Positions 36,067 to 54,672 are shown, numbered from the stretch's first letter. The stretch: DNA of 64,000 nt from Blastocystis sp. Blastoise (GCA_039096225.1 JBBPEB010000007.1:620001-684000); one strand, 5' to 3'. A program made the numbers and translations. Notes: generated from the sequence alone by a model not told the origin.

Positions 36067-39000
36067 TTATAAATAAGGTCCCCATCCAGGAAATAGACTA
36101 CATAATTTATGATTATCACTTGCAGTATTAATAAGTATATCTATATAAACAGAAGGATCTTGAGTCTCTTTAACATCAGTATGACAGTCAAGTTTATTAG
36201 ATATCTATATATATAAAAATAATAGAGATAAGAATACTGAAGAGTTAATAAAAAGATATATATAACAATAAATATATATATATACTTTATTAATAGCTAA
36301 TTGTGCATCTTGTTTTCCATCAATATACTTACGAATCTATATATGTAACAATATTAAGACTATTCTCTATATATATGTAGATATATACATCTTTATTATC
36401 AATATTACTAGTATCTAAACACCATCGATATAGAGGATCATGAAGAAATACCTAGTGTAGAATATAAGTATTATTTATATTATAATAAATATAATTATAT
36501 TAATAGATATTTTAATAATAATAATAATAATAATATATAATAAATAATAAAAAATAATTATTTAGATATACCTTTAATAATGTTAATATAGTTTCTTTAT
36601 TTCCTGCTAATATTTTCATAATATCAGCCATATATCGTTTCATTTTAGCTTCTCCCCCGCGGGGAAAAGGGTCAATAATATTCTGAGTATATCGGAATGG
36701 AATAACCTCGGGAATTGACAGATATCGACCTTGTTCAAATACAATACCAAAATCAATATGAATAACACTTCCTGTATATATATATATATTTAGATATAAA
36801 TAACTATTATATAAAACGAATTAAAAATATATTCATATATATATATACCTGTATATTTTTGAATCAGAATATTCTTTAGATGTCGATCTCCAATACCAAG
36901 CACGTGACCATAAATAGAATATAATGATGTAGAATATAAATAATTCTCTCTACTAATATACCATTGTTGTATATTTGGATAGTTTTCAATAAAATAATAA
37001 TGAAGACAAGGGGAGAAATGATCTAAAATATCCATAAATACAGAATACTATATATATAAATATATAAAATAAAGAATATAATAATATATATAAAGAAGAC
37101 TGTAGCTAGAAACGATAATAATAATATTTATGTGTATATAGATTAACTGAATAATAAAAATCCTTGAAATAAAAGCATACCTTTTCATTCTTGTTTGCTT
37201 TTACTAACTTTTCTCTACACTTTCTTTCTGTGTATTCCCGTGGGAAATATCGCTGGTGAGCAGAAAGTGATACATCACTATAGAATAATATTAACAAATA
37301 TATATATATATAGATATAAATTTGGAAAGCAAAAGATAAATTCAAAATAAAATACAAAATAAAAAATTATATTAAATAAAAAGATACATATCATTAGCAA
37401 TATAATCTTTAAGAGCTATAGTATATCTTAACCAATGTAATAATCCAGCAGAAATAGAGAGAGGAATAATCTATATATAGAAGAATAAAGTTAAAAATCT
37501 TAATAATAATAGCTACAAATTAGTTTTGAAAAATTTATTGCTTGAAAAACATGTATACAAATACATATAAATATAAACAAATAAGTGAATATATATATAA
37601 ATTTGAATATACTTTATATGTGCATAATGATTGATATTTCTGATTATTTTGTATTCGTTGTTGATCAAAATATACGAATTCGTTGAAAATACAGAAAAGT
37701 TGTTGAATAATATAATCTGATTTTATATCATCTACTTTCAGCATCTCTTTATATATATGGGTATTATCTTCATAATCAGAATAAGATATTGTATCGTTAT
37801 CCCCGTGGGAAATACTATTATTTGATGAATATTTATATGTATCAATATATATAGTTTTTGGAACATGAATACCAGTTGCAACTGTCTATATATATAATAT
37901 TCATGATACACATATATAGAATATATATAATATTATAGGAAACAATATATAAATAATAAAGCTACTATATATATTCCTTGAGAATAATAGCTATAAAAAC
38001 AATAATAGATATACTTCAAAATAATCATAAATCTTGTATATATAAGGAAGTGATGGATAATGTTCAAGCGATTCCCATGGTAAATTTGGATAATCAGCGG
38101 TAAGAACAGGAATATCCCACAATTTCTTTTGAGTATCAAAATCGAAAAATTGACTAATTTTAAAGTTTTTCCCTCTACTTTTCATTTCATATATAGATAT
38201 AGATATATATAAAGTAGTAATAGTTATATAAGAATTAATCATAGATTGAAGATTCATAGATGCATTTGATTGGTCAGAGATCATGTGATCTAATATTGAC
38301 TTGATTGGCTTATAAGTAGGTAGTTCTTTATCACGTGATAATGAAGTATTTGTTCCCATTTCTACGTGATAATAATACATTAAATAAGGAAGAAGATGAT
38401 AAGGATAATCAACAGTCAGTTTCATGATTATTTTGCAAATTATACGCGAAAAAAGAGAATTAAAAGAAGGAATTCTTGATAATAACTGATTAAATATGGG
38501 TAAAAAGACATGAATTGGAAGAAGGTCAATTTGTTTAGATACTAATTCATTAATAGAATCTCTATATATATATATATTTAAATTTGAAATATGTTATAAA
38601 GTATATCCTAAATATAATTAAATAGAAATTTATAAAAATACATTTCACAATTATCAAACCATAAATTAAGATATCTATATATAATTTTTCCATTTCCCCC
38701 ATGTTTATTATTAGTTCCATCACCTCTATCCATGTCTATTCCCGCGGTTAAGCATGCAGCATACCAATAAAGTGTTTGTGATAAAGAAATAGAAAGTGAT
38801 GTAGTTATATCTTTATGTGAATTATCTTGTATATAGATCTCTCGAGAACGAATTTTATTATGTAATGATAATAACTGATCTTTTGTTAAACTATATATAT
38901 AATGATATGTATAATGATATTTATATATGATTATACTATAATATATATATATCAAATACTCTTTCCCTCGAATCATTTGAGTTAATACTTCGATATCTTT

Positions 39001-42000
39001 TTTATATGTATTCTATATATAGATATATAGTATGATTATGTATAATATATATATTATATATATACAATAATCTTATCAATGTTTTTCTTTTCTTCACTTT
39101 CATTATAATTATATTTGTTAGTATATATAGATTCATACAAACGAGCTATTTCTAAACAACAATAACCTATATATAAATAATAATAATATTATTATTATTC
39201 TTTTTCAAATAATAATTAAAACAATTATATATATACCCCAATTTTTGTTTTTCTTTGTATATTGTTTACATATTTCTTCATATTTAGAAACATCATTTTC
39301 ATTTTCAGTCACAATATCTGCATATTTATATTGTTGAATTGTATACTGATTTATTTTATCAACATCATTACTCTCTGTAATACATTGTCTATATAGAATA
39401 TATATATAATAATAAGAATGTTTTTAAATAATATATATTATTGACAAATATATAACTATATGTATATATACTTTATAATTCTTAAAGCATGATTATTCAT
39501 CCCTTCTTTAAATAAATATTTACTTAGTTCGAATTTATATATAGATATATCTAAGTCTATTTCTATATAAACATAATATATAAAATAATAGTGTAATTTC
39601 ATATATTCTATTATTATAGTTAAAAACAATATATATATATAAATATATACTTTTATCCTTACTAATCTGTAAAATATGTTCAATTCTTTTATTTATATAA
39701 ATATATTCATTTTTATATCCATATATATTATAGATCTTCAAATGATTAATAAGAATTGTATATATATCTGTTAAAAGTATTTTTTCCTTATATTTAGGAA
39801 GAGAATCGCGGTTATTTGATGAAAATGATTGATAATGAAGAAACATAATAGTTTCCAAATATGTATATAGATCTGATATATACGAATATGTATATATAGA
39901 AAGAGAAGAAGACAGATGCTTTGATATATTTACTAAAGAAATGAAATATAGTAAAATAATAATAAATAACGTTATTAACACAATAGTAATTTAAGTATAA
40001 AACAAATATAAATATAATAATATATATATATATAAATATAATAATAAATGTAATAAATATAATAATAAATATAATAAATATAATATTAATATACAAATAG
40101 TAGACGATGATGGAAGAGAATTATGTTCATAAAGAGAATCAAAATATTGAATGTAATTATATTTTGTAAGAAGCTCAATACTCATAGACTCTATATATAA
40201 TGTAATGATATAGTATAGATACATAGCTATTCTACATACATAAACATATATATATCTAGAATAAAAAATATATATTATATATATATATACTTTCATTATG
40301 AAGTGTATTATTATATATATTCATATATTGATCTATAAATGTATTTATATGCTTAAAAGAGGATGATGATGATGAAATCTGTCGAATCATATCAAATACA
40401 CCTTTATTAATACTATTAGATGCTAAATAATCACGGGAATGAATCGTATCATCTAACAAAAGTGGAGATTCCCATGAATAAGATTGAAGACTCATATAAT
40501 AATATTGATCAATATCTTTTGTCTCCGCATCAATAATACCATTCGATATATACCTATATGAACAAGAAGAGGAAGAATGATAAACATATATATAATATAT
40601 ATATATATATACATATTAAATAAACCATATAATCGTAAAGAAGACATGCTTTCAGCAAGAGGAAGAAAGATCTGTGAATTCCCACGGGGTTCTTGGGTAT
40701 TCAATGAAGAATCAACACTATATATACATGATAGAATATATAAATAAAAACGAAAATAAAATAAATTAATATACATATAAAGTGCTTTCATGTTATCTTG
40801 ATCATTACGTTTATTTGTATATATATAAGGATCTGAAAATATCTGAATATCTTTCTTTGTATATATATAACTATCGATATCATCAATTTCTTGAAAGATT
40901 CCCGCCATCTTTTGGCGGTAAATTTCTTTTTCTTGAGAGGATATCATAACAGAATCATAAGGAGATAGCAAAGGTTTTCCTAAAGTATTCTTATTCCCGC
41001 GATTATTTTCATAAAGATATAGATTATAATCATAAAGAAGTGTTGCTAGATAAAAATGATTTGTATATATACATATATCAATTAATAGAGAAATAGGAAG
41101 AGAAAGAGAAACTAATATAGAACAGAAAGGATCTATGAAATAACCGTGGGAATCATTAGAATTATCAGGAGAAGCATAAGTTCTTAATTTTCTTCTTGGA
41201 TTTTCAGATTGTGTTTCGGATGTAGGAACACTAATGGGAACAAAATCATCAGGTGAATCCGTTGTTTTAAAGAAGAAGATAGAGATCGTCCGAAGAGAAA
41301 GAAGCGTTGATATATATAGAGAGAGTAATTTTGTAAGAAGAGATTGTGGGAAATGAAGAGAATAATCGCGGTTATTACATGTAGAACATGAACTTTGATG
41401 CGTTTGAGGATTTAGTTGTGTTAATGAATATATATGTGTATACATTTCTGAAATAACCGTGGAAATAGAAAGAGTTTGTTTGGCTTCAATAAATACATAT
41501 ATAGTTAATGGAAGAAGATAATATTGAAATATAGGAATAGATGTATAGTTGAGAAAACACTATATATATATAATTGGGTAATAATAATATTTATATATAT
41601 ACAATAATATTAGGTAATTGTGATTTAATTTTAAGTTGATTATATGTATTAAATAAATAGACTATATGTTGTTGTATATATTCATATATAGTAGAATAAG
41701 AGACAATATGAAGAGAAGGAGAAGGAACATTAGGTAAAGATAGAGAAAGAGATGAAATATGATTGGATCTATATATAAATATTATAAAGGAAAAACTTTT
41801 AGTATTATAAAAAAACAATATATATATATATACTTATCGCTATTGATAGATTTTAAGAATAAAAGTATATGTTTATATTTATAAACAGATTTGGGGATAT
41901 CTTTATACAATTGAGAAATTAAGTTATTTTTTGAAAGATAATATAGATTTAGAATAGTTTCATAGGAATCTAAAGGCTTATTACTATATTTTATCCAATT

Positions 42001-45000
42001 TCCATGAGAAATATATAAAGATGAATATAGTAATGAACATAAGCTTAAAAGGTTCTATAGATGAGATTAATAATAATATATAAAAAGATTAATAATAATA
42101 AATTTTGTAATAATAAATATAATAATAATTATTTTAATAATAAAAATATAAATAATTTAAATAATATATATATACTTCTGTAATAGGATTTAGAGTAGAT
42201 TGTGCAGATAGATATGTATATATATTATTCTTTGTATATATAGAATGATAGAGAGATGGACATAAATCAACAACCTATATATATAAGTATATATATACAG
42301 ATCATTAATAATAATTATATATATATATATATACCCATTGTAAGAAAAAGAATATTTCGTTATGAATATTAACATGATTATAAATAGATTGATCCATAAA
42401 TAGAGCACTACTTTCATCAATATAATCACGGGAATCATCATTCATATATAATAAAATAGATATTAATAAATCTTTTAATTCATTAACATCTAATGAAATT
42501 GTTACTGAATTCCCGTGATTATTCGATTCTTCATTTGTTTGTATATTCTTATCTTTATCATTTTGAGTATTTATATTATTATCGTTTTTCCCGTGGCTAT
42601 TTTCCGAGTCTGATTGGTTTGTTTTGAAATTAAATGATTGATTTGTATATTTCGAAAGAGATTCAAGGATATTCACGGTTATTTTGTGTTTTTGAATATA
42701 GTTTTTAATATAAGTATTTAATTGTGGAAGTAGTAGATATATATATGTATAAATATCTTCATTAAGGAGAGAAATACAACGTGAGAAAAATGAAAGTCTA
42801 TATATATGTAATTATATATATGATTATTATTACATACTGTTGATCCAACGATGAATTCTATACATATATATAAGTATTATTTTATAATATATATATATAT
42901 ATATATATACTGAATAATCATGTATATCAGGAATGTATATATAATCAGAGACTTCTTGTGGAAGTAATAGAAGGGACTGTTCTAAATCTATATATATATA
43001 TAATATGTATTATATAATAATGTAATATGTATTATATACTAATATAATATGAATTATATATATACCTTTATTATTTAATATTCCCTTTATCAAGTGAATT
43101 GATGGATATATATAACGAAACACTTGAGATGCATCCATTCCCGCAGGAATTTCTATGTAATCATGATAGATATAATAAATTGAATGAATAAATAGAATAA
43201 ATAGAATAAATATATTAAATAGAATAAATATATTAAATATATTAAATAGAATAAATATATTAAATATAATAAATAAAATTGGTAAAAAAATATAAATAGA
43301 ATAAATAGAATAAATAAAATATACTGAATGTGCAGAGTTGATATATGATTTGTTTAATAAATGTATATACAGTAGGTGTAATAATAGATATATATATAGA
43401 AGAAGATTCTTCTTCGTATAAATACATATATATACAAAATAATAATTTATATGTATATATAGAAAACATCGAATAGAAAGAGAAACATAATTTATCTGGA
43501 ACCTAAATAATCGTGAGAATTATTGGAAGAAATAATAGTTTAACAAAGAAAAGAAGAATATATATAAACATATGTATCATATATTAATTAATAATAATGT
43601 TTATATACATATTGATTGAGTTCTATAAGTAAATAGAAACATTTATATAAATAAATAGTTTTCTCAGGGGTATATTGAACACATAAATCATTTAATAAGC
43701 AGAATAACCTCGAATAAGGGAATATTCGTGGTATATCATCTTTTGATACTCCAAACTATATACATAATATATATATACTATATCATATTATATATATATG
43801 TTGTTTCATATAAAGTAAATAGTATATAATTATAATATAAAAATACCTTTTGTATTAAGATCTCTACTAACTTCGGAATAGTATTCTGGTTCTCTATTTC
43901 CCTCATCTTCTCAGTTAGAAATATATCTCCATTTTTTCGTTCATTATACATATATATATTCTTTGTATAATGAATATATATAAATATATATTTATATATA
44001 TAATCCTGAATAATATCTACACTGTTTTCAAGCTATATATATATATACATTAATGAATATATAAAAAATATATATATATAAAAAAGTATATAAATATTTA
44101 TAAGATATTCAAATATATATAAACAATTACATATATATAAGTATAAATGTATATTTTAATAAATATAGATATAATAATATATATATACAATAAGTAGAGA
44201 ATTAAGTTCTTCTGGTATATATAGTTGAGGAAGTAGATATATAGAAATCATATCTAAATATACTATCCAATATATACGATGTGTATATATATATCCACTA
44301 ATTATATCTAAAGAATCCTTGTTGGGTAGGTATTTGGAGAGAGTATATGATAAAGTGTCATAATCAGGGTTATTTTGAAATTCATTCTTATTAAATGCAG
44401 ATTCCTGTGAATCTCTATATGTATATAAATAAGTATATAATTGTCTTTGAATAATCTCTTCCTATATAATAATAATAATAAATATATAGATAAATATATA
44501 GAAAAGAATATTGTTAAAAGGAATGTTAATATATATATATATATACTTGTTGGAAAATATATATAAATAAAAAGATTGAATTATTCCCATGTGTCAATTC
44601 ATTAAAAGGATATTCAAAATAACCGCGAGGATTCGGATTTCTATAAGAATAATATATTTTTTTATAAATAGTTTTAATAGAAATAAAATGTATATAGTAT
44701 AGATTATATATAGTATATATAGTATATATTAAATTTATTATATATATTATATATATTATATATATACTGAATAAAGAAATGAATAAGAGAAGGATTATAA
44801 AGTGCAGTACGAGATAAAGATAGAGAAGAAACACGGGAATATAATGACTATATAGAGAGAAATATATTAATAATCATGAATATGAAAATAAATATGAATA
44901 TATTATCATAAAGAATGGACTATGAAATTGAGAATAAAGAGTATATTAATATATAAATAATGTATATAAACATATATAAATAATGTATATATATACTCGT

Positions 45001-45279
45001 GTATAATAAGCTTGATATTGATGCAATAACGGTGTATGTGGAGATATATATAGATATTGATAATATATATAGATATAAGAAGGAATATAGATAGATAAAG
45101 AGGATAATAAATGCAAGAGACACAAATAAATAGGGAAACTATCTCTATATAGATATATATGGAGTCAAAGATATATATATATATATATTCAAAATATATA
45201 AATATATACGTTGAATCTTTTAATATTTGAGTTTTTAATTGTCCAATAGAATCAGCAATCAAGGAGGTATCAATTAATC

Positions 45280-45326
<47 letters not shown>

Positions 45327-48300
45327 GTATTGATCTTTAATTAGTGTTGACAAAAGACAATTATAAAGAAATGGATTTCCTGTTAACAAAGATTTGTATA
45401 TATACTCAAAACAATAATCACTATTATATATATATAATATATACAATATAATAAATTATCATTATATATAAATAGAATATAAATATATACATATTAGTAT
45501 AATTCATGGAATATATATGTATATATAAAAGTGGGATATGGAGGGAAAAAAGAGAGGGAGAGGAATGAAGAGAGGGAAGTAATGATGATACTATTGTATT
45601 TACTATATCTAAAACATTATATACTTATATAGATATAGATTAATAAAAGAAAAGAAATACAATAAAAGAAATCATGTTATTCTTAATATATAAATATACA
45701 CTATTATTCTTATGATTATAATATAAAAACACTGCAAGAGATTCGTACATAATTTGGCGGGAAGGAGGGAATTTATACCATGGTTTACCACCACTTAATT
45801 GAATTAATCGAGAAACTGGAGAAACCACGGAATCCATTCGTTGTGCAATACTATTATTCTCTTCATCAGAATCTGATTCTAAAGTAGCTTCTGTATTTCC
45901 ACGGTTATTTATGGAATTATTATGAAACCATTGAAGTAAACTTATATAATCAGATGGAAATTGTTGTGATAAATAATTTAATATTCCTTGTAATAAAAAT
46001 AATCGTGGGGATCCATAGAGTGATAAAGATTGAATTTTATAGATTAATGATGAAATTGTCCATTTACAAGTACATAATTCCCATGGGAAATATGTAAATA
46101 GAATTGAAAGAAGAATATCATTTGTTTCTATAAATAAAGATTCAAGATACATTGATTTGTTGGATTCCCGTGGGGATATAAATAATTGTGATGAATTTAT
46201 TGCTGAATTAATTAGCGAGAATATTTCTAAGTATATTTTCTTTGAATATTCTTGATAAAGAGAAGAACTACGTTTATATAGAAGAAGAAGGAAATAGAAT
46301 ATAGCAGGTATACTATTATTAGTATTAGTAGCAGTAGTACTAATGGACGAAGAAGAAGAAATAGAAGATGATGATGAATATAGAAGAGGTATAAAACGAC
46401 AAAGAGAAATAAGAATGTCTTTATACTGATCACATGCTCTCTCATATTCTGATTGGACAGATTCGTCATTTATGTTTTGTGATGTATATATAGAATATTG
46501 ATTAAGTGAGATATCTATAGAATGAAGAATTGATAGAGAATATAGAAATGAATTGAAAATAGTTTGTGAAGGTTGTTGAATAAGTTGTGTATATAAAATA
46601 TTTAAAGAAGATGAGAGAGAAGAAAGAGAATTATAAATAAATGCTGATAATTGATGAGAAGATAAAATAGTATTTTTTAATGGTGATGAATTTGTAGCTA
46701 TATTTATATTTGAGACATTACTAGAATGATTTAGAGTAGTATTTATATTATTAATAGTAGTATTAGAAATAGAATCTTTAGTTATATTTATAGGAATATC
46801 TTTTGAAATGAAAGTAGATTCTATGAATTGTTCAGAAACAAAGATTGAAGGTATAGTAATAGAAGAACAATAAGATACATAAAATGATGATAATGATGAT
46901 TGTGTATTTGTATTCTTGATATCTTTAAATCCTAAGGGAGATGAAATAATTGTATTGAATGAATAATCATGATTATAAATTCTATATAGAGATATAGAAA
47001 AAAGTGATGATATTATGTATATATATTGAGAATAGATAGTATTCCATAAAGGAATATCGATTTCTCTTGAAGATTTCATATAATTAGTAATAAATTGAGT
47101 TAAAGAGAGAGAATCGATAGATTCTTTATCTTGTATGGAATGTTGAATACATAGATTCAGTAGAAATAATCCATATTCAGTAGGTATAGTATAAATATAT
47201 GTAGATATATCTAACGATGTCTTTTTAAGAAATAATATGAATGAAGTAGATAAAAAAGGTATTAATAGATATAAAGATAATAATTGTTGTTTATATATAT
47301 AAAATTCTTTTTCATTAGAAGCATAGGACTATTTATATAAAATAATAGATATTGGAATATGTATATAATGTATATAGAATATATATATAAAGAATAGATA
47401 TTATAATATGTATATAATGTATATAGAATATATATATAAAGAATAGATATTAGAATATGTATATAATGTATATAGAATATATATATAAAGAATAGATATT
47501 AGAATATGTATATAATGTATATAGAATATATGTATAACAAAACAAATATATACCTCTTTAGAAGAAAAAATAGATATAAAGATTTCATTGATCGTATCTT
47601 TATAGGTATTTAGATCTATGATATATAAATGATAATAAGAATATTATATATATACCATATTCATGATTATTTTCTGATAAATAATAGAGAAATGTTGTAA
47701 AAAGTATATATCCATATCGATAAATATTCTTATATGAAGAAAGAGAAAGATATAGTTTAATAGAGTCAAATAATCGTGGGAATAATGAAGATGGAATTCT
47801 AATGGAGTTTCTAGAAATAAAATTAAAGTGAAAAGATTATTTGTATTTATATATATATGTATATTGTTGTCATTATAAAAATGAATAATATATAAAATTC
47901 TTAAAAATAATATAATATATATAGAGAGAGTAGTATATAATAAAATAAAAAGAATTAAAAAAGAATAAGAACATATAATTAGTTTAATTACTTATATGAA
48001 ATAATATAAATGTTATATATATATATACTTGAATAGAAGAGTAGATAATATATAGATATGAATAGAAGAAGGTGGAGAGATTCTGTTCATAGAAGAAAGA
48101 GTAGATGTATTTGTAAGTAAAGAGATATACTATATATATATAATATAATATAATAACATTTGAAATATATCACAAATAATAATTTTTAAAAAAATATAAT
48201 TTTAAAAATATATAATTTTAAAAATATATAATTATAAAAATAATATAGAATTCATTACTACATGCCTTTTCATTTTCTTCAATAATACTAAATAGAGGTG

Positions 48301-49462
48301 ATTTAACTTCTGGAATAATATGTTTTAAAGAAATAACAGTCTTAGAAGATATATTATTGTTATTATTGTTATTATTGTTATTATTATTATTATTATTGTT
48401 ATTATTGTTATTATTGTTATTTGAACTATTAGTATATACTGTAGATTGACTTTCTTTCGTCGTTAAATTCCCATGGGAATCCTCTGTTGAAATAAAAGTA
48501 GTTGAAGAGATGTTTGGAGTGTAAGAAGAAGGAATAATACTATTGGATGTATTCATGGGAATATCCGTATTAGAGTTGGAAACATCGTTATTCCCACGAT
48601 TTTCGGAACAAAGACGTTTATTTCGATAATTGTCATCAGTTGATTCTTTTATAGTATCTGTTTTATCTTCATTAATAATATTCCCATGGGAATCCAGAAT
48701 ATAATAAGGAGTATAGAGTAAAGAATAAGAATATAATATTGATTTATGAATAATAGAAACAAGTAAAGAAATAGTCAAATAATAAGAATCTTCATAATTC
48801 TCTTGGAAATCAAATACATAAGGTGTTGTTGGCCTAGTTAATATATAAATATATATAAATATAAATATAAATATATATAAATATATATATATACTTTTGA
48901 TTATATGTATTTTTGGATTCTTCATTAAGAATAGGGAATGAAATATTCTGTTGAAAAATAAAAGTAGATAAAAAGTTATAACAAGGTTTAGTTGACTTTA
49001 ATATACACTATATATTTATATATATATATATTTATAAAATAAAATATATTTGCAAAAAATATACATATATATAGAATAAAAAATATATATATATAAATAC
49101 ATTAAGAGTAGATATTGATGTCATTTCTTTATATAAGTTAATAAAAGATTGAATATGTTTATTAACATATATATATAAAGAAGAATCATGAGAATTATTA
49201 GGTAATAGTTGATAAAGTGTTGATATATATATAGATATATAGGAATAAATAATAGATTTCTGCGAACAATATCGTATATCTTCCAAAATATAACTATAAA
49301 TATATATAAATTATATAAACAACTAATTCATAAATATATATAATTTTAAAGTCTTTTTGACATATATATAAGTATATAATAAACATTATATATATATATA
49401 TATATATACTTTAGAAATGCCTCATTATTTTCTTTTATCCATAAACTTACTTCTATTGGATA

Positions 49463-50540: not shown

Positions 50541-51267
50541 TGCATGCAAATAAGATGTCACAAGTGTAAAATGATTTTAAAAAATGAAGAGTGTTGTGAA
50601 ACTTGTTTTTTATTTAATTTTCTTTTTAATTTATTAATAAATATATATTCAATAGCATATTGAAAAATTATAAAGTAATTCTTAGTTGCATATTAATACG
50701 TATCAACATCATTGTTAATCATTTTATATTGTGATAAATGAAATAATTCTTTTGGAAACACCAAAATTAAACTAAAAAAAAAAAGAGAACTCACTTTTTT
50801 CATTATAAAATAAATAAACTAAGATATAAAGAACCAAGAAGCACATAGTAAGAATCTTAGAAATGAAAAAAAGTATGAATTGTAAGGCGAATTTATTTAA
50901 AAAATGAAATAGTTCTGGATTCTTGTCTTTAAAAATAATATATGCATGCATCGATATATATGCATATTTCGCACGAATAGTCTTTAATTGATTTCTCTAA
51001 CAATATTTTCATACTCAAAATCTATTATGTCTATAATGATAATATAACCTCAAAAAAAATATTAATATCATCATTTCTAATATAGCAGAATATTATTTAC
51101 GAAGAAAATGGATATTCAAAATGAGCGCGAAGAAATAATTCACTATCTATTCATAAATATATCAATATAATTCTTTAACTCTACTTACATGTTCGTTTTA
51201 TGACAATAACATACAAAAAAATTCTTGAAAAGAATTAGAAAATTCAAAGAAAATATCTTAATAATGT

Positions 51268-52797
51268 ATTTTTAAATACTATGAAAGAAACGAGTTATTT
51301 TCCCTGATGAGCCGATATATACCGAGCTTGCTCGGTATATTCGGCATTTTTACACGAGTCGAAGGACGAGTGTAAAAATAATCAGGGAAAATAACGAGTT
51401 TCATTCATAGTATTTCAAAATAATCATTTTTCTGTTATTATGAAAGAAAAAAATCAAAAAAATCATGATTACATGTCAGACTTTGTTTATTTCCCCATTA
51501 TTGAATGTTCAGTTATTTGTGTTCCATATTAATAATATATAAAAATTATAGAATATAAAAATATCTACCATTTTTTATATAACAGTATTTCAGTTTTATG
51601 TGGGTCAATACATTTATTCGTGATTTTCTGTTATTATTTACAGTAAATATGTTATTTCACAAACTAACCGTTATTATTACTATTTCTCTTTCTCTGTTTT
51701 ATGTATGAAAAGTGATCAATTATTCATGTTATATTATGAAAAATGTTGATTACTATACATAAAAAGATGACGAGTCATTTGTCATTTCTCTTTTTATATC
51801 AATCTTTTATAATAACCTTGTTTATTAGATAATATTTAATAGAAATTTCAAATTAATCATGAAAATTATTTTTTTTATAATAAACTTATTATTTTTCTCT
51901 CTTTTTAATGTTCAGTTATCATCATAATTACTATTTTTATATATTTATCATATATATTTTAATGACTTGACTTGATGACAGATGTTACGTCAGGATCCAT
52001 TTGAAAAGATTCTATTTTTACACTCATTTTTTTGTTATTATTGAAAATGCTGTTAGTATGTTATTGTCTATTTTTATAGCAATTAAACTATGTCTCTATA
52101 GGTCACTTTGATGATTTTTAAAAAAGAAATGGAAATGGGAAGATGATTATAAGAAATGGTTGTTGAAATTCATTCTAGGTTGGCTGTGTGAACAAATGAA
52201 GATGCTAGTAAGAAGTTGAAGTGCTTTCGTTGATTGTTTTGCTAAAAAGATGAATTGGTTGAAATGATCTCTTCTTTTCTTATGATGTCCAATGTATATA
52301 TATATATATATTATATCTCTCTCTTAAAGTAATATTATATTTATTAATATTGATATATTATCTATAATTTTCTTTTCATTCTTAGCCATTTGTTTATCTA
52401 TATTTATATATATTATAATAAAATTACTTGAAATATGTTATATATATTATTTAGTGTTGAAAGAGTACAGAGAGTATATTCTTGCTGGTAATTGTTTAGC
52501 CTTAATTGCAAGTTATTGTAGTTTTTATTAGATATGTCATTATTAATGAATAGTTCTTTAGTGTATGTATTAAAATAAATATTTCTATTCTTATTATCTT
52601 CATTTTTTTTCATTCTTTATTATATTTTTTTATTATTTTTAAAATTATTTCCTTCATTATTATATGAGTTTTTTGTTTCTTTCATACTGTGAAAGAAATT
52701 TTTTTCGTTTCTTTCACAGTTTCCCCCATCATTACTACCATTTTAATCACGGTTATTTTTTTTTTCTTTCATAGTAACAGAAAAAAAACCATTTTTA
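51268..52797. mobile_element. Putative non-autonomous element with a Y-shaped terminal hairpin and subterminal inverted repeats (class uncertain: Crypton-like or Helentron/HINE-like)
   Basis: Three-way hairpin at 51268-51421. Inverted pair TTTTTCTGTTATTATGAAAGAAA (51426-51448)/TTTCTTTCATAGTAACAGAAAAA (52763-52785). 13-bp hairpin at 52687-52720. ATTTTTA direct repeat at both ends (weak evidence). Confidence 0.65.
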
Positions 52798-52991
52798 TCT
52801 TTCTTTTCTCTTAGTTTCTATTCGGAATAATATGAAGAATAGATATCAAAAGAGAAGTACGAGACAACAGAAGTTTGAGCTGAATTCAGAAAAAAAATGT
52901 TTGGATAAAAAGCAAAAGATATCTATGGAAAAACGTATACATGATAATTTAAAATAAAAAAAGTTATATATTATCTATTATTTTATCGAGA

Positions 52992-54672
52992 ATGGTTAAA
53001 GAGAAAATTGATTCAAATACATATACAATAAGTGATGTTCAAAATGATATTATGGCTTATGAAGAATTGATGAAAAATGTAATGAATGTATTTACATCTG
53101 TGTTGAATCTCGGTAATCATTTTGAGAGATTTGCCAGAGTTTCTCTTAACTGTTCAGGTGGTGATTTCAATATGAAGAAACTGGATAATTCTTCATCCAA
53201 AAAATCTAATTCAAGAAGAAAAGAAGAAAAGAAGTTATTCAACAAAAGTGATCAAAAAGAAAATGATATGGATTTGATTCGTTTCACAAATACAGGTCCT
53301 ATTTTCTCGATATCAAAAAGTGCACTAGATAGTGTGAAAGGTTCATATATAGATGAACAACGTGCTGATGATTTAAGAACAAATGATGGAACAATATTTC
53401 TAGGTTATGATGGTAATGATGCTTCTGTTTATTATTTATTAGATTATTTGAATGGTAAACCTATGAATTTAAATTCTGTAAATTATCTAGAACAATTAGA
53501 AGTTTTAAATTTATTTGAATTTTGTGGTTTAGCTATTCCTGAAGAATTAATTGATTGTAGAGGAAGAAGAGATCGAAAGAGAAAGAGATATGAAGAACCA
53601 GATGAAGTTCATTTATTTATTAATGGAAAGGAAGATACAATAATAAGTAATTATTTGAAGAAAAATAATTTATGGAGTATTTATATAAGAAGTTGTGATA
53701 GTGGATATGTGTATTATAATCATAAAGATAATAGTTTATTTATGGATAAAAATTATCAATATATAGAATATATAAATACATATATAAAACTTGGCACTAT
53801 ATATATAGAAGATACAAAGAAATCAGAAATTAATCAGGAATTATTAGAGATAGAAATGAGTAGTCTATTTGGTAATAAAGGAAAGGAAGTAGCTCAACAT
53901 GCAAGTATTCCTTTTCAATTATTTAATGGAACTACAATAATATCCAATAAATTAATGGAAGCTCCATTAGTTAATTGGATTAATAATAATGGAAAAACTG
54001 TTTTTATGAGTATATGTGATCGATTTTCTAGTAATGAAAAGAAATGGACATTATTATTTAGAGCAAGTGAGCATCATTATTCAGCAAGTCAATTTCATAA
54101 ATATTGTGACAATAAAGGAGAAACAATAACTCTTATTAAACATATAGGTCATAATAATCATATTAATATATTTGGAGGATACACGAATCAAAGCTGGGAA
54201 TCTAGACAAGGTAATTATATATAGAATATGTTATAATATATGTTATTATTTATAGAATACTTATAATATATAATATATTATAATATATAATATATTATTA
54301 TATATAAAATACTTTAATCTATAATATATTATAATACATATATAATATATAGTAGCAAAATATTATTCAAAAGAATTTATATTTACCTTAAGTAATGAAC
54401 ATGATATTCCTCCTACAAAATATGATAATTTGAATGATGGTAAGAGTTATGGTATATATTGTGATCCTTCATATGGTCCAACATTTGGTAATAAATGGGG
54501 TGATATTAAACTAGCAGATAAATGTCATACAAATGATTATTCTTATTGTAATTCAGAAGCTTATACAGAAATTAATATTCCTCAAAAATGTAGAATATTT
54601 GTAAATACTGCTGATACTGATTATATGAATAATTTCTTTGTTGAAGATTATGAAGTATGGGGAAAAATATAA
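52992..54672 (+). CDS. Tandem BTB + TLDc domain protein, copy 4
   Basis: Exon 1 52992-54210, single intron 54211-54352 (NAGNAG acceptor; 54355 is also in frame), exon 2 to 54672. Intact TLDc motifs. Confidence 0.9.

Follow-up and report, generated by a model that had tools for sequence, protein, structure and literature searches.

The three-way hairpin described here, from Blastocystis sp. Blastoise, is very probably the terminal cis element of a tyrosine recombinase (YR) transposon, and we propose that it is a cis-acting recombination site used as folded sense-strand DNA. Across hairpin families, the non-Watson-Crick positions are biased to what the folded gene-sense strand tolerates (tandem G·A, G·T, purine·purine, and C-GAA-G loops). 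The window is the whole stretch of DNA that was analysed, 64,000 nucleotides long (GCA_039096225.1 JBBPEB010000007.1:620001-684000), and belongs to a genome of 33.3 Mb in 34 contigs with ~21% GC. Its relevant features, and the copies found elsewhere, are as follows (C29 is the contig label of the window copy in contig comparisons).

51260-52786, + strand: non-autonomous, ORF-less, Crypton-like element, ~1.53 kb; homology to C14:314717-316233 begins and ends there
51263-51427, + strand: three-way hairpin, the complete terminal palindrome
51274-51308, + strand: 5' arm of the outer stem, 35 nt; contains a CTATGAAAGAAA site and CGAG at 51291-51294
51311-51345, + strand: arm 1, with a bulged T and a TT loop; present only in the C29/C14/C16 subfamily and missing in C23
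51346-51379, + strand: arm 2, with a GAAG loop; CGAG at 51355-51358 and 51367-51370
51381-51415, + strand: 3' arm of the outer stem, 35 nt; contains an inverted CTATGAAAGAAA-type site and CGAG at 51395-51398
51427-51453, + strand: internal inverted copy of the right terminus (TIR_L), a 27-nt inverted match to 52759-52785; adjoins the hairpin on its inside
52680-52723, + strand: three subterminal (C/G)TGAAAGAAA-type motifs in alternating orientation, conserved in four of four right ends
52759-52786, + strand: right terminus (TIR_R); boundary within the A-run 52781-52788, four right ends aligned
C14:314717-314887: full Y copy, 98% identical to the window
C16:866493-866663: full Y copy, 99% identical to the window
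C23:~220958-221073: diverged hairpin copy without arm 1

Folded as DNA, 51260-51430 reaches -54.6 kcal/mol, compared with -13.1 +/- 2.8 kcal/mol for shuffled sequences (n = 200, z -15). Positions 51263 and 51427 form the base of the stem in this MFE fold, which extends beyond 51268-51421, the span in which the first-pass annotation had drawn a Y-shaped hairpin with a 35-nt outer stem and two arms, and has the same three-way junction. Both the sequence and the MFE fold bear out that description, and CGAG/CGAG is present at both of the places (outer stem and arm 2) where tandem G·A had been claimed. The outer stem comprises 32 Watson-Crick pairs, one A·A, and one CGAG/CGAG 2x2 loop, and the core of arm 2 (51355-51370, CGAGTC-GAAG-GACGAG) combines tandem G·A with a C-GAAG-G mini-hairpin loop. 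All four CGAG words lie on the + strand. A hammerhead core, suggested by the CTGATGAG word, was considered and rejected (there is no GAAA after stem II, and the junction strands do not fit).

The first-pass annotation expected the hairpin to recur in the genome rather than to be single copy, and two further Y copies were indeed found, along with the diverged copy on C23. The three Y copies, including that of the window, are near-identical (98%-100% identity), and the C23 copy is flipped and simplified. Conservation of the G·A mismatches, the other expectation, held in part: all four CGAG words are identical in the three Y copies, but the C23 copy is without tandem G·A. Given that the three copies are 98%-100% identical and that the sole diverged copy lacks the G·A motifs, these motifs are best read, within this genome, as a single evolutionary observation. 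The Y copies differ from one another at three positions, and all of the changes are structure-neutral on the + strand (e.g., A to G at 51299, by which an A-T pair becomes G·T on the + strand and C·A on the other strand). The arm-1 loop is TT in the window and AA in C14, as expected from inversion of a small palindrome.

Identity between the window copy and C14 is 98% in the hairpin and 96%-99% in the next 100 nt (96%-99% over the left ~300 nt), falls to 45%-96% in the interior (lowest, at 45%-82%, in 52060-52660), and is 94%-100% in the last ~130 nt. Conserved ends around a diverged interior are, to judge from these alignments, the pattern of a non-autonomous transposon with its ends under selection. 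There is no ORF of at least 70 aa inside 51260-52786; that ORF-less copies keep the hairpin at 98% speaks for a part in mobilization and against one in recombinase expression. Seven sites of the CTATGAAAGAAA type were counted: one in each hairpin arm, one at 51427-51453, one at the right end, and three at 52680-52723, the last three being putative accessory recombinase-binding sites. A whole-genome census of CTATGAAAGAAA gave 46 matches vs. 30 in the control; as these elements by themselves account for the excess, this is not a large family. The window element lies in the gap 50900-52992, before a 410-aa TLDc-type ORF (52992-54224), and may affect a divergent promoter region.

Two longer relatives, on C16 and C23, carry one gene, a YR, and the linked tyrosine recombinase for which the first-pass annotation had suggested a search is thus present in relatives of the same element. 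On C23 the element is 2.5 kb long, and its YR gene is broken into pieces of 93, 212, and 75 aa. In C16b (C16:968269-973187), which has the right-end module in common with the window element, the YR gene is intact, with two exons (L053:949-1432 and 1495-2409) and a 62-nt GT-AG intron, and matches a 465-aa NCBI model. The exons were searched separately, and the database protein P0001 was used for whole-protein analyses. Pfam recognizes PF00589 (Phage_integrase, E 4e-13) and a SAM-like N-domain (26 bits) in the YR, and gives no match to DUF3504. In an alignment of 10 relatives, R148, E151, K175, H259, R262, W285, and Y294 are invariant, and the catalytic R-K-H-R-W-Y set is complete. Besides the YR there are no other ORFs in C23 and C16b, and downstream from it C16b has only simple repeats and 489-bp tandem repeats. 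Because the longer relatives carry only a YR, we regard the window element as a non-autonomous Crypton-like transposon. There is weak similarity between the window interior (~51795-52049) and the region upstream of the YR gene, and the window element appears to be a deletion derivative of a YR-only, Crypton-like transposon.

A word-based protein search with the YR returned only this genome's own two proteins, and the sole match in a PDB sequence search was Cre (E 0.49). An exhaustive HMMER search found 2,548 YR relatives, the nearest being other Blastoise proteins, insect proteins, and proteins on small metagenome contigs; at the level of protein clusters, the nearest are eukaryotic (oomycetes, molluscs, sponges, and arthropods).

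The left end of C16b was not found, and homology begins abruptly at C16:968269, beside GC-rich DNA and a 2.7 kb repeat. This direct repeat, which abuts C16b, has a motif at C16:964940 and 967633. A solo left end (C16:866493-866723, the hairpin plus ~50 nt) lies 102 kb upstream of C16b in the same orientation, and the solo left end and the C16b copy lacking one may be products of rearrangement or recombination of the element.

Nine more YR loci in the genome (32%-38% protein identity) represent five families with elements of 1.65-2.0 kb. All five have an imperfect palindrome, with a 55-70 bp stem, no more than ~35 nt from the left boundary and upstream of the gene. Ten metagenome families were fetched; in seven of them the YR gene is preceded by at least 230 nt, and a palindrome was found in five of these seven (the P0156, P0152, P0014, P0016, and P0022/P0031 types). 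The other two (L077 and L080, with 260-280 nt upstream) have no long hairpin; L078, L204, and L206 include too little upstream sequence to judge. Across families, the stem is 30-75 bp (mostly 55-75 bp, with ~30-40 bp in F8 and F9), and begins either no more than ~35 nt from the 5' end or immediately before the gene. P0014 and P0156 are each represented by several differently flanked copies, which define an element of ~1.5 kb whose hairpin is 5-20 nt from the left end. The left terminus is AATAGT(T/A)ATTT in most families and AATAATGTATTTTT in the window. The Y shape is lineage-specific and not the conserved feature.

Element flanks were searched for short terminal direct repeats, fixed TSDs, and empty sites, and there was no clear or consistent case. 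A MITE or foldback element of a DDE transposon was rejected as an identity for the window element (its ends match YR-bearing elements, and no fixed TSD was found). It should be noted that long imperfect direct repeats flank two elements, L059 (C15:124518-127949) and L058 (C28:302609-306178). These repeats (24 nt with one mismatch and 33 nt with three) begin at or within the right terminus, and the 99%-identical sister copies, L061 and L055, are without them. They are too long for a YR crossover, and could be a head-to-tail junction remnant or reflect an unusual insertion pathway. In the P0156 family, L063, L064, and L065 (from different samples) have one flank in common and the other flank different, a pattern that suggests recombination between element copies or polymorphic tandem arrangements.

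Several other palindromic sequences were seen near these elements. The F2/F3 hairpin apex (L056, L054, and L059) is ATTTCCC-G(A/T)A-GGGAAAT and resembles the TTCCCRYGGGAA palindrome of the window (36650-48690); palindromes of the TCCATGGAAATCCATGG type are densely arrayed in L064:1-300. Short GC-rich hairpins are also present 3' in two metagenome YR elements, one with TTTTCCGCCCTAGGGTGGAAAAG three times (L080:1150-1390) and the other with a 17-bp perfect stem (L079:1390-1450, with a GTGTAAGT word in common with the 5' hairpin).

The first-pass annotation had also proposed that the structure is selected on one strand only. For comparison, one representative hairpin per family (F1-F12) was written gene-sense. 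In 12 of 12 families, folding favors the sense over the antisense strand, with the largest gap in F6 (-44.2 vs. -30.9 kcal/mol; seven G·T pairs). Summed over the MFE structures, on whose prediction all mismatch counts depend, the sense strand has 36 purine·purine to three pyrimidine·pyrimidine mismatches (binomial p 4e-8) and 23 G·T to two A·C (p 2e-5); because of DNA-level relatedness among F2-F5, these counts represent about nine independent groups rather than twelve. Strand-biased C-to-T mutation could also contribute to the G·T excess. There are five tandem GA/GA loops in the MFE structures vs. zero TC/TC, and the F2-F5 hairpins have a conserved T bulge in the 3' arm. By direct reading of the sequences, six families contain ~11 CGAG/CGAG occurrences in total, without exception on the sense strand (two in F1, the window; two in F7, L069; one in F8, L071; one in F9, L079; two in F10, L128; and three in F12, L207). 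With nearest-neighbor DNA parameters, the complement of the window hairpin folds equally well (F1 shows a sense-antisense gap of only 0.6 kcal/mol); the energy of the window copy alone therefore cannot reveal one-strand selection. The claim draws its support from the cross-family bias and not from the energy of the copy for which it was made.

The C23 hairpin is a complication. It is flipped as a whole relative to the element body, and its antisense strand is the more stable (-37.6 vs. -32.1 kcal/mol). It has a fully paired outer stem, CAAG facing CTCG in arm 2, and neither arm 1 nor tandem G·A. This is the only F1 copy with both hairpin and gene, and the intact-gene copy, C16b, is without the hairpin; thus, the "sense" orientation of F1 rests on ORF-less copies and on the other families. 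The C23 copy is degenerate (broken gene, altered left terminus), and may be dead. The C23 flip and the C14 loop inversion show that palindrome interiors invert over time.

The apex is near-identical in F8, F9, F10, and arm 2 of the window, and consists of CGAG, one or two pairs, a GAA(G) loop, and CGAG again. The core CGAG-(N)C-GAA(G)-G(N)-CGAG is common to F1, F8, F9, and F10, with a C-GAA-G triloop in F8, F9, and F10 and C-GAAG-G in the window. A metagenome scan for this core returned 80 loci, 79 of which were chance matches: 77 lay in GC-rich DNA, and the other two, L135 and L147, are contigs of lower GC content that have no YR. The only true relative, L128, provides a further metagenome hairpin (F10), on a contig that ends before any gene; it was oriented by its left-terminus motif. 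One of the lower-GC contigs (L135:800-1000; Ga0214481_100789, eukaryote-like) has two adjacent CGAG-NC-GAA-GN-CGAG mini-hairpins, and no YR in the 900 nt on that side. The context for sheared tandem G·A in DNA is 5'-Y-GA-R-3', and CGAG fits this pyrimidine-GA-purine context. GCGAAGC and its GAAG-loop variants are exceptionally stable as DNA (melting at ~70-76 °C) and less so as RNA, and the apex loops C-GAA-G (F8, F9, and F10) and C-GAAG-G (window) match these stable d(GCGAAGC)-type variants (PMC13037366). Such mini-hairpin and sheared G·A motifs show a capacity to fold, not use.

The other end of the element also bears on how the hairpin might work. To mimic a circle, the last 45 nt of the element were joined to the first 230 nt, and the product was folded. 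In F1-F5, 34-40 of the last 45 nt pair with the segment that adjoins the hairpin on its inner side (17 in F6), and the circle-junction fold gains 8-17 kcal/mol over the integrated context. The joining point lies in an asymmetric bubble (~5 unpaired nt in F1, 6-7 in F2) and is flanked by inverted copies of the repeated motif, most clearly in F8. Because the right end is an inverted copy of this adjoining segment, a circle junction would extend the palindrome. In these modeled folds, the layout is as expected if a circle carries a very long palindrome that integration opens within one arm; a crossover between duplexes at this site would lead to it just as well.

Our reading of these observations is graded. 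That the single-stranded fold is what is selected seems to us likely. That the selected strand is DNA and is the recombination substrate we would place a little short of an even chance. We infer the single-stranded intermediate, the single-strand use, and the chemistry. The sense strand would fold on itself as single-stranded DNA, and the folded hairpin would be the recombination site that the recombinase recognizes; G·A motifs, bulges, and G·T pairs would mark strand and register. A single strand exchange with the target would come next, and replication would resolve the product. The broadest form of the proposal is held more tentatively still, namely that a miniature eukaryotic YR transposon clade (Blastocystis plus metagenome organisms) moves via a folded single-stranded DNA hairpin with sheared G·A and GAA mini-hairpins as marks.

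The palindrome might instead be a double-stranded array of inverted recombinase-binding sites (lox-, FRT-, or att-like) that never folds, with the CGAG words as directional protein contacts. Each end does carry motifs of the CTATGAAAGAAA or CTGAAA type in either orientation, the presumed circle junction has inverted repeats on both sides (again, clearest in F8) that could be an ordinary double-stranded core site, and canonical models of Cryptons and YRs use duplex sites (PMC3212892). However, a duplex site leaves the strand bias (23:2 for G·T/A·C and 36:3 for purine·purine/pyrimidine·pyrimidine) unexplained and gives no reason for DNA mini-hairpin loops at the apex. Also, the presumed spacers between inverted motifs, at 10-27 nt, are longer than the 6-8 bp typical of YR cores. 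We consider this alternative unlikely.

The strand bias would fit equally well if the folded sense DNA were a single-strand priming signal (ssi- or sso-like) that turns a single-stranded circle duplex, and not a recombination site. Mini-hairpins of the C-GAA-G type are found in single-stranded DNA priming signals, and C-GAA-G and CCGAAGG mini-hairpins occur in the complementary-strand origins of G4, ST-1, and alpha3 and in ssiA, where they are recognized by primase (PMC13037366). Against this, the hairpin lies directly at the element boundary and integration splits its outer arm, which ties it to crossover, and the elements are without a replication protein. A priming role is therefore, in our view, improbable.

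Could the hairpin act as RNA, on the sense transcript, as a 5' leader that regulates the recombinase or as a Dicer-type hairpin? It is upstream of the gene and on the sense strand, and both G·U and tandem G·A are stable in RNA too. However, it begins 3-35 nt from the left boundary, hence there is no room upstream for an internal promoter, and it is best conserved in ORF-less copies, which have nothing to regulate. Moreover, GAA triloops closed by C-G are a DNA motif and not an RNA stability motif, and a search of Rfam 15 at gathering and permissive thresholds gave no family at or above the gathering score (the best match, a plant miRNA model, scored 29.7 bits vs. a gathering score of 83). An RNA role seems very improbable.

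An HUH/Rep-processed or parvovirus-like origin hairpin of an integrated single-stranded DNA replicon, the analogy drawn in the first-pass annotation, is scarcely credible and did not survive: the Y shape with mismatch bubbles and the inversions between copies (the C14 loop, the whole C23 hairpin) do recall parvoviral termini and flip/flop, but no Rep/HUH ORF was found in any copy or relative examined (the single gene, also in the autonomous copies, is the YR), the hairpin is at one end only, and the Y shape is not conserved across families.

These results have several implications. The work brings to light 1.5-2.5 kb elements that combine a single gene with a single strand-marked hairpin, where Cryptons have been described without terminal structure, and it explains a repeat class left unclassified in published Blastocystis genomes. 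It also defines a minimal enzyme-substrate pair, a 465-aa recombinase and an oligonucleotide of ~165 nt, with which to test how a eukaryotic YR chooses and cuts its DNA. To our knowledge, there is no eukaryotic case of folded single-strand YR recombination. If single-strand recombination proves true, a mechanism known only from bacteria would reach eukaryotes as the first counterpart there of integron attC and CTX-phage recombination, and it might offer a compact system for site-specific integration.

Among known systems, parvovirus termini (the T-shaped ITR of AAV, the Y-shaped left end of MVM) are processed by HUH Rep/NS1 and lie at both genome ends. The hairpin described here resembles them in its three-way form, similar size, purine mismatch bubble, and interior inversion between copies, and differs in having no linked Rep, in being confined to one end, and in belonging to a chromosomal transposon. 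An internal region complementary to the termini is also found in DIRS1-type YR retrotransposons, where a closed circle junction is possible (PMC13465315). Our elements are likewise YR elements with such a region; unlike DIRS1, they have no reverse transcriptase and no RNase H, and are 1.5-5 kb in size.

The closest parallels to the proposed use of one strand are bacterial. In integron attC/IntI and CTX attP(+)/XerCD, the partner of the YR is an imperfect palindrome that is better conserved in structure than in sequence, as is the case here. Strand choice is set there, as it would be here, by features unpaired on one strand, namely extrahelical bases in attC and a forked hairpin in CTX attP (PMC5027507, PMC4792948). 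The integrated form is also, as in CTX attP(+), that expected from crossover within one arm of a folded stem (PMC5027507, PMC4792948). The palindromes of these elements are imperfect and have strand-specific non-canonical features (the 12 of 12, 36:3, and 23:2 biases, the T bulge of F2-F5, and CGAG/CGAG). In contrast to attC, the marks are tandem G·A, G·T pairs, and single-base bulges rather than extrahelical bases, and single-strand use is a proposal.

Crypton DNA transposons are said to go back to Goodwin in 2003. Literature searches of incomplete coverage found no description of Crypton terminal hairpins or of hairpins in eukaryotic YR elements. Cryptons have been described without TIRs or terminal structure and with only 4-6 bp direct repeats (PMC3212892; Kojima and Jurka 2011), and no transposition experiment has ever been reported for them (PMC3212892). 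The present elements depart from that description in having a terminal palindrome, an internal inverted copy of the other terminus (the 27-nt inverted right-end copy), and strand-biased mismatches, and in being much smaller (mostly 1.5-2.5 kb; range 1.5-5 kb). They agree with Cryptons in being eukaryotic mobile elements whose only enzyme is a YR with a SAM-like N-domain, in their low copy number, and in having non-autonomous derivatives with only the ends in common. C23 and C16b have the YR catalytic set and neither reverse transcriptase nor DDE transposase, and the window copy is gene-less. As in CryptonS, the host is a stramenopile. On these comparisons, the element would seem best filed beside Cryptons.
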